Translations under genes and position numbers: made by a program
The notes under the pieces: model-generated
Databases searched by the model: none
Told to the model about the DNA's origin: nothing
The model's input: the letters and a program-made list of their open reading frames with translations, nothing else
From: Obrimoposthia wandeli
Lineage: Eukaryota
Length of the DNA stretch: 64,000 bases
Direction: 5' to 3'
Assembly: GCA_977020255.1 (NCBI GenBank)
Contig: CDROCS010000506.1
Location: 930,001-994,000 of the forward strand
Shown: positions 19,205-24,916 of the stretch, piece by piece
Layout of the letters: each line of letters opens with the position of its first letter
How positions within the stretch are numbered: position 1 is the first letter of the stretch

Positions 19205-20632
19205 TTATGCAAATTCATGCATGTCAATGCCAGCCATTTTTTGCATTACGCGTAATACCTGACAGCTGTAACCAAACTCATTATCATACCAAACGTATAA
19301 TATTGCGCGGTTACCTTCAGCAATCGTTGCTAATGAATCAACGATACCTGAGAAACGGCTACCAACCATATCTGTTGATACTAATTCTTTCGATGTGCTG
19401 AAATCGATTTGGTTGTGTAATGGCGAGCTTAACGACATTTCTTGTAAGTAGCTGTTTAGAGATTCTCTTTCAACTTCTTTTTCAAGATTTAAGTTAATGA
19501 TTGCCATTGATACGTTTGGTGTTGGTACACGGATAGCGTTACCAGTCAGCTTACCTTTTAATGCAGGTAGTGCTTTTGCTACAGCAGATGCAGCGCCAGT
19601 TGACGTTAGTACCATGTTCATTGCAGCGCCACGGCCACGACGATCACCTTTGTGGAAGTTATCAATCAAGTTTTGATCATTGGTATATGAATGCACAGTC
19701 TCTACGTGACCATTGCTAATACCGTATGCATCTTGAATGGTTTTTAGTACCGGCGTGATCGCATTCGTTGTACAGCTTGCTGCTGACACGATGTTATCTT
19801 CAGGTAAGATATCGTTATGGTTAACGCCATAAACGATGTTTTTAATATCGCCTTTACCCGGTGCTGTTAATAATACTTTTGCTGCGCCAGGTGCTTTTAA
19901 ATGTAGACCTAGGCCGTCAGTATCACGCCAGATACCCGTGTTATCGACAACTAACGCATTGTGAATACCGTGTGCAGCGTAATCAATTTGATCAGGACCA
20001 TTTGAATAAAGGATCTTGATGTAAGTACCGTTAGCAATGATTGCATTGTTTTCAGTATCAATATCAATCGTACCGTTGAACTGGCCATGTACTGAATCAC
20101 GACGTAACAGAGATGCACGTTTTTCAATATCACCAGGACCGCCACGTACAACGATTGCACGTAAACGTAATAAATTGCTTTCACCTGTTTTATCAACAAG
20201 TAGGCGTGCAAGTAGACGACCGATACGACCAAAGCCATACAGTACGACATCACGAGGTTCAACTGCTGTATCGCTATTTAATGCAGGTGCTAATTCAGCA
20301 CGTAAGAATGCGTCGATACCAGTAGAATCTTCGTTTTCGCCCCAATAGCGAACAGCCAAACGGCCTATATCAATTTGAGCGTTACTAATCGGTAGTTCAC
20401 TGATCACTTGTAGTAATGGGAAAGTTTCAGTGAAACGTAAAATACGTCCTTCATGACGCTTAACTACGCGGTGTGCTTTTTGAAGATCAATTGCGGTTGC
20501 ATTTTGTAATGGGCGGCCATAAATTAATACCTCAACGCCTTTATTACGATACAGCTTTCCTAACAACGGTAGCATAGACTCTGCGAGTTCTTGGCTCTCT
20601 TGCCAATTTAATAAATGACTTTCAGATGGCAT
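19205..20632 (-). CDS. Long-type GAPDH-family dehydrogenase with about 125-aa N-terminal extension
   Basis: YGFGRIGR, ASCTTNA catalytic Cys, HSYTNDQ, WYDNEFGYS. Confidence 0.92.
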   Translation of the reverse strand: MPSESHLLNWQESQELAESMLPLLGKLYRNKGVEVLIYGRPLQNATAIDLQKAHRVVKRHEGRILRFTETFPLLQVISELPISNAQIDIGRLAVRYWGENEDSTGIDAFLRAELAPALNSDTAVEPRDVVLYGFGRIGRLLARLLVDKTGESNLLRLRAIVVRGGPGDIEKRASLLRRDSVHGQFNGTIDIDTENNAIIANGTYIKILYSNGPDQIDYAAHGIHNALVVDNTGIWRDTDGLGLHLKAPGAAKVLLTAPGKGDIKNIVYGVNHNDILPEDNIVSAASCTTNAITPVLKTIQDAYGISNGHVETVHSYTNDQNLIDNFHKGDRRGRGAAMNMVLTSTGAASAVAKALPALKGKLTGNAIRVPTPNVSMAIINLNLEKEVERESLNSYLQEMSLSSPLHNQIDFSTSKELVSTDMVGSRFSGIVDSLATIAEGNRAILYVWYDNEFGYSCQVLRVMQKMAGIDMHEFA

Positions 20633-21052
20633 CTCTTTTCCCTTTTAATCACAACTACATGTAAGAAACATTAAAATAACAGCGGCATAACCAACAGCTG
20701 ACATTTAATCAATTTGATAGCTTAATCATACAAAAATAACCGCGAATTTACCAATTAATCATGTCAATTAGGTCTTTTTTTACTTTCGGACTTTCATTCA
20801 AAACACAAATATTTAACAATGAAATAGGAACACTTTCACTTTTTGCGCTTGCTCACTTTATAACCGAGGTATTTATTTGCTCAACCGCAAACCAATATTT
20901 AATCCATCGTGGATAAATCATAAAGAAAGGAGGTGATATCATTAAGCCCAGCCCCCAAATTGAGGCTTTTAACTCCCCCCTATCTCACTCATTAGACAGT
21001 GTGCGTAAATCTATGATAGGGTTTCCTCATCTCCTATTTAAGTCTTAATGTT

Positions 21053-21949
21053 ATGTATCGTGTTCGCTTTATTCGCCGTCTAATTCCAACGGTTGTTCTA
21101 GCAAGTTTACTCATCGCATGTGATGCTCCTAACAATGTAGCTACGATTTGTGGAAACGATAACGCGATCTGTGCAGATTTAAATACCGATGAATGGTGTC
21201 AGGCAGAAAGAAACGAACTAATCACTAAGCGTTTTGCTGCTAAAGAAAGTACCCATGACCAAGCACAATATGGATTATTAACCGCACTTAATAATTTTCA
21301 AGAATGCATCAAAATAGCCGCGCTCATTGAGCCAAGAACACACCCCGAGTTAAAAACCCTCCGGGTATCAGCCATGTTGAGCACTTATGACGAATTGCTC
21401 GCCTTAGAAAAGAAAACGCTGACCAGTAATAACCCCTATATACTCAATTACCACTGGGTTGCACATAACAACGAAAAGGCTAAAAAACGTTTTATCGCCT
21501 TATCAAAGCAGCAAGGTTTCGATGATCCCGCTCTGTATTTTGCTATTGCAAATATTTACGATAACAATAACGCCAAAGCTATCGCTAATTTACTAAAAGG
21601 GTTAAGCCTCGTTAACCACGATAATCAATTCGACGATTCTCGGTTAGGCAACGCTCAATTAAAAAACTCTCGATTAGATAGTAATACCGACATAACAACC
21701 AAACTGCTCTACGCCATTATCACGGCTTACATGCATGAAAGAGATTACGCACTGGCTTATCTGTGGTCGCAGGTTGCGATAATTTCTGATGTGGAAAATA
21801 TAAACCTAGGTCTGTTTAATAAACATAAAGTAACGCCAAACGAACGACGCCGTTTAGATTCATTAGCAGCAACAGTAGCAGAACAAATAGAAGAGCAAGA
21901 ATTTACGACTGACAGCTACTCAGATACGCTATCAGTCGTTGGGCTTTAA
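21053..21949 (+). CDS. DUF2989-like lipoprotein
   Basis: Lipobox LLIAC, C..LN.D.WC..ER pattern; usual neighbour of gap in Vibrionales-like genomes. Confidence 0.75.
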   Translation: MYRVRFIRRLIPTVVLASLLIACDAPNNVATICGNDNAICADLNTDEWCQAERNELITKRFAAKESTHDQAQYGLLTALNNFQECIKIAALIEPRTHPELKTLRVSAMLSTYDELLALEKKTLTSNNPYILNYHWVAHNNEKAKKRFIALSKQQGFDDPALYFAIANIYDNNNAKAIANLLKGLSLVNHDNQFDDSRLGNAQLKNSRLDSNTDITTKLLYAIITAYMHERDYALAYLWSQVAIISDVENINLGLFNKHKVTPNERRRLDSLAATVAEQIEEQEFTTDSYSDTLSVVGL

Positions 21950-21965
21950 TCTAGCGATAAAGCCC
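21941..21965. terminator. Hairpin between convergent genes
   Basis: GGGCTTTA-ATCTAGCGA-TAAAGCCC. Confidence 0.6.
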
Positions 21966-21984
21966 GTTTACAATCATTTCGCAG

Positions 21985-23349
21985 CTACAGTGGTAACTGT
22001 TGCAGGCCACGAGCATCTAAATAAGCAGTTAGCTCTTCAGGTAACTCAGCATCGGCTTGATAATAGCAAGCGCAAGCATGGCGCTCACAACTCAATAGAA
22101 TGATACTCAACAATTCATTGAATTCATGATTCTGCCAAATACCAGCATCACCTATCGTTAACCATTGCTGCATAATCGATAATGGTTGATTAAGTACTAT
22201 GCCTGTCGATTGCATCGTAGTGAAGTCAACTAAAGTGCGGAATGCAGCATAACCATCTTGGCGTAACTGGTAGCTATTAATGCCCGTTGCAGTTGAACTC
22301 GCCGATACATTATCTAACTGACTATTATCTAACAGACTATTATCTAACAGACTATTATCTAATAGACAGTGTGCTAACTGATAGTCAGCTAATAACCACT
22401 GAGCAAATGAACCCGCATTAGCCACATCAATCGCAAAATCAATATCACGTAATAATGACTTACCAGTCAGCGCATTGTTCGCAGTTACGACTAACCATAA
22501 GTAAAACTCATAATCATCACTATGCGCATCTTGCCATTCTACCGTTTGTGTTTCTTGGCGTGACGCCGTCACACCATCAGCAGTATAAGCCGCTAAATAT
22601 TGGGCTAAATGCGTTTGCTGTAGTGCCGCGCCTGCAATAACCGTCTTCAACGTCAAAGCAAACTCAGTCTGTGCTTTATCGTTATTAAACTGCTGCTGTA
22701 ATTGTGCAAGTTGGGCAGATACAGTCTCTGCCGATTCGCTATCATTCATCGCAACAACAGCTAAACCTGGCTGTGCGTAAGTTAATAACTGGTTCAGCAC
22801 TGCTTCTGTTGTTGGTAATGCTGTTATCGTTGTCGAAGAAGCAGACGTAGAGGTTAGCGTAGCCGGTGAATTAATTATCCAGCTTTCGCCCAATGGCTCT
22901 TCACTACCTTGATCAAGAATAACGAATTGATAAGCGCCGACAGCAAGTGGCTGCGTGAAGCTAATTTGATAACTCTGCATTTCCATATCGTGTAAATGAT
23001 AAATACCATTTAACGACCATTCAACTGGCGTAAACTCAGCTGTTTCAATCACAGTTTGGTTTGACCTGATTTCCCAGATTAAATCTTCAGTCACAAATTC
23101 GATCGGTAAATGCAGATCAAATTGGATCTCTGCGGATTCATCCATCACGATCACAGGCGGTAATGCACGTAACCAAAACTGCTTAATTTCTTCTTCTAGC
23201 TTTACGTCTAATTCATCCGTAAAACCAAAATCAGTCAATGCTTGTGCAATGAGCGTTGTCGGTAACGCTTGTTCATCGCCATTGGCATTTAATTCCGTAC
23301 AGCTAAGACCAAGCATTTGGCCTAATTGCAGAATATGTTGTGCTGTCAT
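21985..23349 (-). CDS. Degenerate 4-alpha-glucanotransferase (MalQ/GH77) homologue, predicted catalytically inactive
   Basis: Matches recalled MalQ blocks: LPPVIV..W, DDYEFYLWL (DDVDFYLWL), LLRDI (LYRDL), YAAFRTLV (YEPFIELL), NELLSIILL..ERHAC (DDLLSILAL..KRHRC). RIDH reads VLNQ, GEDLG reads YQADA, C-terminus missing. Confidence 0.72.
   Translation of the reverse strand: MTAQHILQLGQMLGLSCTELNANGDEQALPTTLIAQALTDFGFTDELDVKLEEEIKQFWLRALPPVIVMDESAEIQFDLHLPIEFVTEDLIWEIRSNQTVIETAEFTPVEWSLNGIYHLHDMEMQSYQISFTQPLAVGAYQFVILDQGSEEPLGESWIINSPATLTSTSASSTTITALPTTEAVLNQLLTYAQPGLAVVAMNDSESAETVSAQLAQLQQQFNNDKAQTEFALTLKTVIAGAALQQTHLAQYLAAYTADGVTASRQETQTVEWQDAHSDDYEFYLWLVVTANNALTGKSLLRDIDFAIDVANAGSFAQWLLADYQLAHCLLDNSLLDNSLLDNSQLDNVSASSTATGINSYQLRQDGYAAFRTLVDFTTMQSTGIVLNQPLSIMQQWLTIGDAGIWQNHEFNELLSIILLSCERHACACYYQADAELPEELTAYLDARGLQQLPL
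22310..22367 (-). repeat. In-frame 15-bp tandem repeat (about 4 copies, LLDNS/QLDN) in the MalQ-like gene
   Basis: ttatctaactgacta ttatctaacagacta ttatctaacagacta ttatctaatagac. Confidence 0.9.
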
Positions 23350-23742
23350 TTGACACCTTAAATAGTGAACCTAGCGCTATTATACCGAATCAATATCAAG
23401 ATGCGAGGTCACGCGTTATTACAGCAACACTGTTTCGTGGGTTTTATGCCACTCTTGTCTATACTCCACTAAGGCAAATCTTTATAACTGAACTGTATTA
23501 TTTAAACAAATGTCGATTTATTTAATCTTTCAATTTTTTAATACTATATAAATAAGACACTTAGGCAGCATTAATTACTAATTAAAATGAGTTTAAAGAA
23601 CAAATAAGGGAAATATTCATGCCAATACCGCGGTTGGTAATGTTAATTTGGGCTCTCAGTTATTTAATTTATGTAATAAATAGTACGAAAACACATAATA
23701 AAGTGACTTAAATCAGTTTATTTTCGTAAATTTGCAACATTT

Positions 23743-23758
23743 TGTGATTCAACTCATA
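23743..23758. promoter_or_regulatory. CRP-like site upstream of gap
   Basis: TGTGA-TTCAAC-TCATA, one mismatch from TGTGA-N6-TCACA, AT-rich flanks. Confidence 0.6.
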
Positions 23759-23794
23759 CATTTTAGTATTTATTCTTGTCTTTTTATCAGAATC

Positions 23795-23808
23795 TTGTAA
23801 ATTTACAA
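23795..23808. promoter_or_regulatory. Perfect 14-bp palindrome, candidate operator in gap promoter
   Basis: TTGTAAATTTACAA about 50 bp upstream of the ATG. Confidence 0.45.
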
Positions 23809-23859
23809 CCAAGCAAGATTATTAATTCAAACTTACATTTAATTTAATGGATACAAGTT

Positions 23860-24873
23860 ATGACAATTAAAGTAGCAATCAATGGTTATGGTCGAATCGG
23901 CAGAAACGTACTTCGTGCATTCTACGAAGGTGGTAAAGAACAAGATCTAGAAATCGTTGCAATCAACGACCTAGGTGATTCAAAAATCAACGCTCACCTA
24001 ACTAAATATGATACTGCACATGGTCGTTTCCCTGGTACTGTTGATTTTGATGCTGAAGCACTAATCATCAACGGCGACCGTATCAAGACTTTCTCAGAAC
24101 GCAACCCGAAAGACTTACCTTGGGCTGAACTAGAAGTTGACGTAGTTCTAGAATGTACTGGTATCTTCGCAAGCAAAACTGCATGTCAAGTTCACCTTGA
24201 TGCAGGCGCTAAGAAAGTACTTATCTCTGCACCAGGTAAAGATGTAGATGCAACTATCGTTTATGGTGTTAACCAAGACGTAATCACTGCAGACATGACT
24301 GTTGTTTCAAACGCTTCATGTACTACTAACTGCCTAGCTCCAATTGCTAAACTATTAAATGATACTGTTGGTATCGAAAACGGCATGATGACTACTATCC
24401 ATGCTTACACAAATGACCAACGTCTATCTGATGTTTATCATTCAGATCTATACCGCGCACGTGCAGCGGCAATGAACATGATCCCAACAAGCACAGGTGC
24501 TGCAGCAGCAGTTGGCCTAGTAGTTCCTGAACTACAAGGTAAATTCCAAGGTATGGCGGTACGTGTACCAACAATCAACGTATCTCTAGTTGACCTTACT
24601 TTTGAAGCTGGTCGTGATACGACTCCTGAAGAAGTTAACCAAATCATCACTGATGCAGTAGCTGCGGATCCAATCCTAGCGCGTGCACTAGCTGTTAACA
24701 ACGAACCTCTAGTTTCAATCGACTTCAACCATGATGCACACACATCTAACTTTGATGCGACTCAAACTAAAGTTCAAGGCAAACTTGTTAAAGTTATGTC
24801 TTGGTACGACAATGAGTGGGGCTTCTCTAACCGTATGTTAGATAACGCTATCCTACTTATGAGCGCTAAATAA
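23860..24873 (+). CDS. gap: Type I glyceraldehyde-3-phosphate dehydrogenase
   Basis: [29 protein letters not shown]...[14 protein letters not shown]; strongly biased codons. Confidence 0.96.
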
Positions 24874-24916
24874 TCAAACTAGATTAAATAATCTAAGTTA
24901 ATTGATTTATAATGCT

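Follow-up and report, generated by a model that had tools for sequence, protein, structure and literature searches.

A truncated MalQ derivative, probably non-catalytic, conserved next to gapA in Moritella

The gene and its locus

The DNA analysed here, referred to below as the window, is a stretch of 64,000 nucleotides (positions 930,001 to 994,000 of contig CDROCS010000506.1, forward strand) from the GenBank assembly GCA_977020255.1, deposited under the name Obrimoposthia wandeli. On the minus strand, at positions 21985-23349, it carries an uninterrupted open reading frame (ORF) of 454 amino acids, present exactly as described in an initial annotation, which had read it as a catalytically dead derivative of MalQ, the amylomaltase of glycoside hydrolase family 77 (GH77). 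In the encoded protein, a conserved N-terminal domain and a conserved C-terminal module (C-module) are separated by a variable middle region, and the gene lies between a divergent gapA and a convergent DUF2989 gene (Table 1). Orthologues sharing 66-96% identity with the window protein were present in all Moritella species found, namely Moritella dasanensis, M. marina, M. yayanosii, M. viscosa and several further Moritella strains. These close homologues identify the source of the DNA as a Moritella, and the protein and its close relatives are called here the Moritella protein and the Moritella type.

Table 1. Position of the gene, of its parts and of the surrounding features in the window.
Feature	Position	Strand	Basis
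MalQ-derived, putatively non-catalytic protein, coding sequence, 454 aa	21985..23349	-	ORF list; ATG start, stop codon 21985-21987
N1 subdomain, helical, residues 1-60 (about the first 50 residues of MalQ)	23170..23349	-	AlphaFold (AF2) helices 3-12, 31-40, 47-60; alignment to intact MalQs
MalQ_N β-sandwich, residues 63-165, best-conserved part	22855..23163	-	Pfam PF21226; dN/dS; alignments nearly invariant
Middle region, residues 166-354, variable, helical; degenerate first half of the barrel and B subdomains	22288..22854	-	dN/dS, indels, low model confidence
LLDNS repeat, in-frame 15-bp unit, 3.9 copies	22309..22367	-	Tandem Repeats Finder
C-module, residues 355-454, conserved; equals MalQ β4-α4-β5-α5 (E. 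coli 426-519)	21988..22287	-	Profile and hhalign alignments
Asn387 codon, site of the MalQ nucleophile Asp448	22189..22191	-	HMMER pairing
Gln431 codon, site of the MalQ acid/base Glu496	22057..22059	-	HMMER pairing
TATAAT, candidate -10 box, ~30 nt 5' of the ATG	23379..23384	-	Invariant across six Moritella species
AAGGTG, Shine-Dalgarno sequence, 4 nt before the ATG	23354..23359	-	Invariant in the same six-species upstream alignment
Hairpin, 8-bp stem GGGCTTTA/TAAAGCCC, between the convergent genes, overlapping the DUF2989 stop codon	21941..21965	.	Sequence and folding
gapA, 337 aa, divergent neighbour	23860..24873	+	Pfam Gp_dh_N and Gp_dh_C
DUF2989 gene, 298 aa, convergent neighbour	21053..21949	+	Pfam PF11207, E 1e-45

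Descent from a long-form MalQ

When compared as a single sequence with E. coli MalQ (PDB 4s3p), the window protein gave an E value of 0.1 only (phmmer). A profile built from 19 orthologues brought this value to 6.1e-6, and alignment by hhalign, spanning residues 331-517 of MalQ, was obtained with a probability of 94.6% (E 7e-8). When 1.84 billion representative proteins were searched with a profile, full-length MalQs were recovered at 1e-7 to 1e-4. HMMER paired Asn387, which sits in VLNQPLSIMQQW, with the nucleophile D448 of E. coli MalQ (...RIDHVMSMLRLW), and Gln431, located in CACYYQADA, with E496 in the VIGEDLG sequence of MalQ. The Asp to Asn (22191-22189) and Glu to Gln (22059-22057) substitutions initially proposed were thus reproduced independently.

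The Pfam model MalQ_N (PF21226) matched residues 63-150 of the window protein with 18.4 bits (E 0.003; gathering threshold 24.1 bits). Weak matches to the same model were given by 18 of the 19 orthologues, and a short relative, P0031, scored 27.0 bits, over the cut-off. The PF02446 (GH77) and NCBIfam MalQ models did not match the window protein, and in its middle region the likeness to MalQ is confined to residues 271-289, which correspond to MalQ 332-350.

P0031 belongs to a set of natural relatives of 297-299 residues (P0031-P0035), encoded at the same chromosomal position, in which the N-terminal 165 residues are joined to the C-terminal ~100 and the entire central region is deleted. Both the long and the short forms were modelled. 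The AlphaFold model of the 454-residue protein had a mean predicted local distance difference test score (pLDDT) of 65.9; its best eight Foldseek matches were all long-form amylomaltases (E ~1e-8), and VIA placed residues 53-454 of the model onto 52-519 of the matched chain with a Z score of 10.5. For the 299-residue form, a pLDDT of 88.5 and a predicted template modelling score (pTM) of 0.86 were obtained. This model matched the amylomaltases of C. glutamicum and E. coli with Z scores of 16.9 and 14.4, respectively (root-mean-square deviation (rmsd) 3.2-3.5 Å over 250-284 residues), its residues 2-299 mapping to amylomaltase chain residues 2-517. The fold searches thus brought long-form amylomaltases to the top, and Z scores of 10-17 were reached with these enzymes only. 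The structural superposition, with the weak MalQ_N matches, supports the retention of the MalQ N-terminal domain that had been claimed.

Other candidate identities were rejected. The FrpC, NifQ, DUF5901 and slr1796 matches given by the single sequence in Pfam and NCBIfam were taken as chance noise. Matches of residues 62-129 to DAPK1 and other kinases in the PDB (E about 0.5-1.8) were not significant and had no structural support, and those to immunoglobulin-like folds (Z 6-7) reflect merely the generic β-sandwich of the N-terminal domain. One M. viscosa orthologue is named "Lipoprotein" in UniRef; this identity was discarded, as the N-terminus is homologous to the N1 helix of the cytoplasmic MalQ and the short forms are without the Cys.

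Sequence, structure, gene neighbourhood (see below) and placement in the gammaproteobacterial MalQ tree all assign the window protein to the GH77/MalQ homologous superfamily. It was concluded that the window gene descends from a long-form GH77 MalQ.

Loss of the catalytic apparatus

In E. coli MalQ, the GH77 reaction depends on the nucleophile D448 (strand β4, RIDH motif), the acid/base E496 (β5, GEDLG) and the transition-state stabilising D548 (β7, THD). Among the orthologues of the window protein, N, T, S or I stands in place of the nucleophile, and Q, A or L in place of the acid/base. The third residue is missing altogether, the window protein ending at a position equivalent to ~519 of E. 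coli MalQ, and no remnant of it can exist downstream because only 35 bp separate the stop of the gene from that of the convergent DUF2989 gene; the early stop and the lack of a remnant had both been correctly described. Arg446, His449, the Trp of the GQNWG loop, the β1-β3 motifs and all of β6-β8 are lost as well. Thus, of the nucleophile, the acid/base, the stabilising Asp and the complete (β/α)8 barrel with B1-B3 that make up a functional GH77 enzyme, the window protein has none.

A table of the catalytic positions gave a sharp partition by length. D448, E496 and D548 are all kept in every match of 696-743 residues, and every protein of 297-625 residues is without D548 and without D448 and/or E496. 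Taken together, these comparisons support the view that the window protein cannot catalyse the GH77 reaction.

The barrel has been dismantled beyond its catalytic residues. Its former first half, the middle region, shows many indels and a low model confidence. It includes the LLDNS repeat which, according to the initial annotation, replaces the GQNWG loop. The repeat is real and lies roughly at the position of the loop; it is nonetheless specific to one group of strains, being carried only by the window protein, by P0001 (one unit fewer) and, in a diverged version, by P0002, and absent in most orthologues. The copy number of its 15-bp unit differs between near-identical strains (P0001 is 96% identical to the window protein), as in a slippage-prone length polymorphism.

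The Asp to Asn and Glu to Gln pair had suggested a protein that has lost catalysis and kept its sugar-binding pocket. Since the substituted sites vary and the barrel is gutted, the window protein is not of that kind, and no active-site cleft is left for maltodextrin sensing. What is conserved is a core consisting of the MalQ N-terminal domain and of the β4-α4-β5-α5 piece of the barrel against which this domain packs.

Maintenance by purifying selection

A word search returned 36 homologues, with relatives down to 41% identity, and the reading frame was intact in nine of nine orthologous loci checked at the DNA level. The ratio of nonsynonymous to synonymous substitution rates (dN/dS, calculated by the Nei-Gojobori method (NG86)) among Moritella species was 0.11-0.21 for the whole gene. 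It was 0.07-0.17 for the N-terminal 165 residues, 0.16-0.34 for the middle region (residues 166-354) and 0.03-0.17 for the last 100 residues. Essential catalytic residues are thus absent from an enzyme homologue that keeps an intact frame under purifying selection across species, as expected of a pseudoenzyme. As judged from these substitution patterns, the gene is shown to be maintained by purifying selection and not to be a decaying pseudogene. The orthologues therefore answer the initial expectation in their intact frames, low dN/dS and shared truncation, but not in the conservation of the Asn/Gln pair.

Invariant His, Asp, Glu and Cys residues of the family include H80, E84, E88, H120, D121, E123, D146, E151, H408, E412, C421 and C428. 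Three of them, H408, C421 and C428, are invariant in the Moritella-type family and absent from intact MalQ, and this gain therefore leaves room for a new site.

One relative with 41% identity and fully conserved synteny (L007) comes from a 204-kb bacterial contig (GCA_052426985.1, JBNOXG013482447.1), which is probably an associate or a contaminant within a large eukaryotic or metagenomic assembly, the contigs of which are numbered into the millions.

Origin of the locus

In the related loci with enough flanking sequence, the Moritella-type gene is always divergent from gapA and has DUF2989 or gap2 on its other side; in most of them it is convergent with DUF2989, followed by a gene for a 475-residue paralogue of glyceraldehyde-3-phosphate dehydrogenase (GAPDH). 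The profile search also yielded more distant proteins of 350-625 residues made of MalQ_N and an incomplete GH77 domain that breaks off at about position 345 of the 465 in the profile; their genes adjoin gapA or the 475-residue GAPDH (gap2 in locus L017). One of them, a dead MalQ of 625 residues in Flocculibacter collagenilyticus, still has a glgB-like gene on its 3' side.

For one group of these truncated proteins, the closest relatives of full length are the MalQs of Psychromonas. In Psychromonas sp. RZ22, the gene order is crr-ptsI-ptsH-cysK-sbcB-gapA<->malQ-glgB-glgX-DUF1315, and malQ encodes a 730-residue enzyme with the D/E/D triad intact. Dead forms of 520-550 residues are found in the same gene frame, with glgB-glgX missing and DUF2989 in their place. 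The Moritella gene is therefore the in-place remnant, or positional orthologue, of the malQ of a gapA<->malQ-glgB-glgX locus. As the intact malQ of Psychromonas has the same arrangement, the adjacency to gapA is inherited and gives no evidence for a functional link; the connection between glucan status and glycolysis that had been drawn from the divergent gapA loses its footing here.

No MalQ of Moritella was present among the best 120 of the 7834 matches to Psychromonas MalQ, which is suggestive and not proof of absence, and a literature search for an intact malQ in Moritella found nothing.

Parallel truncation in two clades

A maximum-likelihood tree was built from 20 dead and 16 intact sequences. 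The dead forms fall in two separately supported clades. Clade A (support 99/94) contains the Moritella type together with P0038, P0040, the Flocculibacter protein and P0054. Clade B (support 100/99), with members of 518-569 residues (P0041, P0043-P0045, P0082-P0084 and P0093), is nested within the Psychromonas MalQs and adjoins the RZ22 enzyme (100/97). Forcing a single dead clade costs 102 log-likelihood units and was rejected by the approximately unbiased (AU) test (p 2.8e-10). On this phylogeny, dead and truncated MalQs are shown to have arisen independently at least twice. The C-terminal ends nevertheless lie no more than about 7 residues apart, at E. coli positions 518-519 in clade A and 521-525 in clade B.

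Regional conservation follows the same pattern in both clades (Table 2). The N-terminal domain, which is the least conserved region in intact MalQs, is the most conserved one in the dead forms, where β4-α5 is intermediate.

Table 2. Conservation of MalQ regions in intact and dead sequences.
Group	N-domain	Barrel first half	β4-α5	Tail
Intact MalQs	0.45	0.59	0.76	0.64
Dead clade B	0.65	0.33	0.55	absent
Dead clade A	0.69	0.36	0.60	absent

The acidic motifs of the N-terminal domain are already found in the intact MalQs of Psychromonas, Aeromonas and Motilimonas, and the function kept by the dead forms is therefore probably one that the active enzyme already has. A metagenome scan for clade B gave matches of 31-43% identity, presumed to be full-length MalQ loci rather than clade B loci.

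Expression signals and neighbouring genes

The TATAAT and AAGGTG elements upstream of the gene were considered as a putative promoter and ribosome-binding site. The consensus promoter scan did not call the TATAAT, and a good -35 box is absent. Between the convergent genes, the hairpin postulated as a terminator does exist (-14.4 kcal/mol, z -2.18 by folding), but the U-tract is absent on the minus strand, on which the gene lies, and the terminator scan makes no call. No RNA family was detected by Rfam within 20600-24000.

Four marine or sediment metatranscriptome libraries (X2, X4, X17 and X18) were read as assembled contigs. In three of the four (X4, X17 and X18), both the gene and gapA have contig coverage, and the spacer has hardly any. 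In X2, one contig begins at 23371, within 1-2 bases of the predicted transcript start of the MalQ-derived gene, and crosses the whole spacer into gapA (window 23371-24900); this could be due to DNA carry-over, to a long gapA leader or to antisense transcription.

The ~200 bp located 5' of gapA (23640-23860) are almost invariant in six Moritella species and exceed the neighbouring coding sequence in conservation, so that the block resembles a control region or leader of gapA under strong constraint. It contains the CRP-like sequence TGTGATTCAACTCATA (23743-23758), on which the description of the intergenic region as CRP-bearing had been based. This is a single match with one mismatch, situated ~100 bp from gapA and ~395 bp from the MalQ-derived gene. 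As the window holds three such one-mismatch matches and 2.35 are expected, there is no enrichment, and the description was not upheld.

The DUF2989 protein has a lipoprotein-like N-terminus (…LLIAC), and its gene replaces glgB-glgX beside both groups of dead MalQs. Beyond it lies the second GAPDH gene (19205-20632, minus strand), the 475-residue product of which carries ~125 extra N-terminal residues before the NAD-binding domain (Gp_dh_N from residue 128). A GAPDH of this kind, of 475-482 residues, is encoded in most related loci, and several adjoin the DUF2989 gene. The glgB-like gene of Flocculibacter (L014:9281-11413, CP059888.1) scored 393 bits with the NCBIfam GlgB model, the cut-off being 741 and the Psychromonas GlgB reaching 952, and no Pfam match to an α-amylase catalytic domain was recorded for it. 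Like the dead MalQ at this locus, its product may be a glucan enzyme that has degenerated or been repurposed.

Interpretation

The observations are probably best explained by an in-place malQ relic, devoid of catalysis, in which the function resides in the N-domain module and is exerted by binding. The ancestor would have been a malQ heading a malQ-glgB-glgX operon divergent from gapA, as in Psychromonas. The Moritella lineage has lost glgB-glgX, the final third of malQ and all three catalytic residues (Asp, Glu and Asp). What was the first half of the barrel has decayed to a variable helical linker, which related uncultured lineages have deleted outright. Selection retains the N-domain (N1 and MalQ_N) with the β4-α5 segment as its docking partner, and this module may bind an α-glucan or oligosaccharide, or else a protein partner. 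Long-form MalQ with its catalysis intact would already have had such a binding role, and selection would have acted on this role alone after catalysis could be dispensed with. Within this same probable explanation, the product is predicted to be a cytoplasmic, non-catalytic protein expressed from its own putative promoter.

Binding of an α-glucan or of a partner through the MalQ N-domain is our best guess for the activity of the module, a protein partner being equally possible as the target; as a class, a binding, scaffold or regulator function without catalysis is the most reasonable. The earlier idea of a repurposed non-catalytic protein therefore stands as far as the loss of catalysis and the maintained selection are concerned; it fails in placing glucan sensing at the dead catalytic site, for which the N-domain has to be substituted.

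Several points weigh against this explanation. The 454-residue model has only a moderate confidence (pLDDT 65.9), the contigs of RNA libraries may include DNA, and those of X2 cover the intergenic spacer too. The starch-binding role of MalQ_N is an in silico proposal, and the binding of a ligand or partner by the present protein is what we infer from it and from the conserved module; likewise, selection in clade B is what we infer from conservation patterns. In addition, a glucan-binding role would be odd if Moritella is without α-glucan metabolism, and this would be the main weakness of the glucan guess.

The competing explanations account for part of the same data. A malQ fragment left after the deletion of glgBX, open by chance and drifting, would show the truncation, the loss of catalytic residues and the indel-rich middle with its slippage-prone 15-bp repeat, and the Flocculibacter glgB, far under its family cut-off, could mean that the locus is in decay. 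Such a decaying pseudogene is nevertheless extremely unlikely: none of the orthologues examined, down to 41% identity, has an interrupted ORF, dN/dS is 0.11-0.21 overall and 0.03-0.17 in the two conserved modules, the putative promoter and the Shine-Dalgarno sequence are conserved, metatranscriptome contigs lie over the gene, and the minimal form is predicted to adopt a compact and confident fold. That a novel active site was built from the family-specific conserved residues, turning the protein into a new enzyme, is also very improbable. Fold searches give no known catalytic fold beyond the MalQ fragment, Pfam and NCBIfam give nothing beyond MalQ_N, and the motifs LPIDFVTD, EVEFQxY and EEGNEEPL are for the most part already present in the intact MalQs of Psychromonas, Aeromonas and Motilimonas; these points outweigh the many invariant His, Asp, Glu and Cys residues and the very strong conservation of the N- and C-modules (dN/dS down to 0.03) from which a new enzyme might be argued.

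A regulator or partner of GAPDH, linking glucan status to glycolysis via GapA, the 475-residue GAPDH or the shared control region, has a better claim, although we regard it as unlikely. In both dead clades, nearly all loci with sufficient flanking sequence have gapA next to the gene, the 475-residue GAPDH and DUF2989 are often nearby (the neighbour in L017 being gap2), and H408, C421 and C428, absent from intact MalQ, were acquired as invariant residues. The gapA<->malQ arrangement is, however, older than the catalytic loss, as seen in Psychromonas, so that descent explains the synteny, and the CRP-like site by gapA is a lone match close to the consensus, in a window that shows no enrichment.

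Returning to the binding module of a malQ relic, a more far-reaching version of this explanation may be advanced tentatively, although we think that it is rather doubtful in its entirety. Together with the β4-α5 platform on which it sits, the N-domain could have a function of its own that needs no catalysis, namely the binding of a ligand or partner, possibly with a regulatory effect. This function would have been valuable enough to be rescued independently at least twice when marine gammaproteobacteria dropped MalQ catalysis and the adjacent glycogen genes. In Moritella, the module would have been minimised (297-299 residues in relatives) and would have gained H408, C421 and C428, suggesting a new or sharpened site, perhaps a metal or redox-sensitive contact, conceivably tied to the flanking GAPDH genes.

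The two dead clades amount to a natural experiment on the MalQ N-domain: two lineages lost catalysis, were cut near the same residue and kept this domain under as much constraint as in active enzymes while the barrel decayed, which points to a separable function. The 299-residue form, predicted to fold confidently, offers a minimal construct on which this function can be tested. There is also a practical consequence for annotation. NCBI names these proteins "hypothetical protein", and UniRef "4-alpha-glucanotransferase" and once "Lipoprotein"; the names are inconsistent because the NCBIfam MalQ scores of the dead forms are low or nil (130-232 bits, and none for the window protein, where the intact Psychromonas enzyme reaches 945 bits with a cut-off of 806). 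The label "4-alpha-glucanotransferase" would mislead metabolic reconstructions of Moritella. In the full-text literature, no paper was found on a GH77 pseudoenzyme, on the Moritella protein or on DUF2989, in keeping with the initial statement that such a protein had not been described; within the literature searched, this would be the first GH77 pseudoenzyme that we could trace.

Comparison with known systems

Long-form MalQs, as in E. coli, Corynebacterium and many gammaproteobacteria, are distinguished from short amylomaltases by an N-domain of ~140-170 residues for which we know of no established function. E. coli MalQ (PDB 4S3P/4S3Q/4S3R) has the same arrangement of N1, MalQ_N and β4-α4-β5-α5 as the Moritella protein (Z 14.4 and rmsd 3.2 Å for the short form), and shares with it DFYLWL as well as the stretches around the RIDH and GEDLG positions. 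It is longer, with 694 residues against 454, and its D448, E496 and D548 correspond to N, Q and an absent residue in Moritella.

The best structural match to the short form is the amylomaltase of C. glutamicum (PDB 5B68/5JJH; Z 16.9, 283 of 299 residues). Unlike the Moritella protein, this enzyme of 706 residues is active and has the triad D460/E508/D561. Deletion of its N-domain abolishes activity (PMC9860158, PMC11046441), and binding of starch or α-glucan by the MalQ N-domain, the sole published idea on this domain that we know of, has been proposed in silico, in work cited in the same two papers.

The MalQ of Psychromonas RZ22 (730 residues) occupies the same position relative to gapA as the Moritella protein and shares with it the N-domain motifs LPI(D/E)FVT(D/E), (D/E)xE(F/I/M)QxY and EEPL. 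It is full length, with the triad intact and glgB/glgX beside it, whereas the Moritella gene encodes a shortened, dead protein and has the convergent DUF2989 gene in place of glgB/glgX. The dead MalQs of clade B resemble the Moritella type in ending at nearly the same residue, in having lost the nucleophile and/or the acid/base, in their gapA and DUF2989 neighbours, and in the decay of the barrel's first half alongside a conserved N-domain and β4-α5. They differ in their separate origin and in that this first half is still recognisable (Pfam GH77 positions ~3-350 of 465).

Other glycoside hydrolase families are known to have given rise to pseudoenzymes, such as the chitinase-like lectins of GH18 and the GH13-like heavy chains rBAT and 4F2hc. 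These proteins descend from glycosidases, have lost catalytic residues and are kept for binding or scaffolding, as is proposed here for the Moritella protein. They retain, however, a complete barrel, and the lectins also the sugar cleft. The Moritella protein would thus have followed an unusual route to a pseudoenzyme, in which the barrel was dismantled and not merely inactivated, and what was kept is the accessory domain with a quarter of the barrel.

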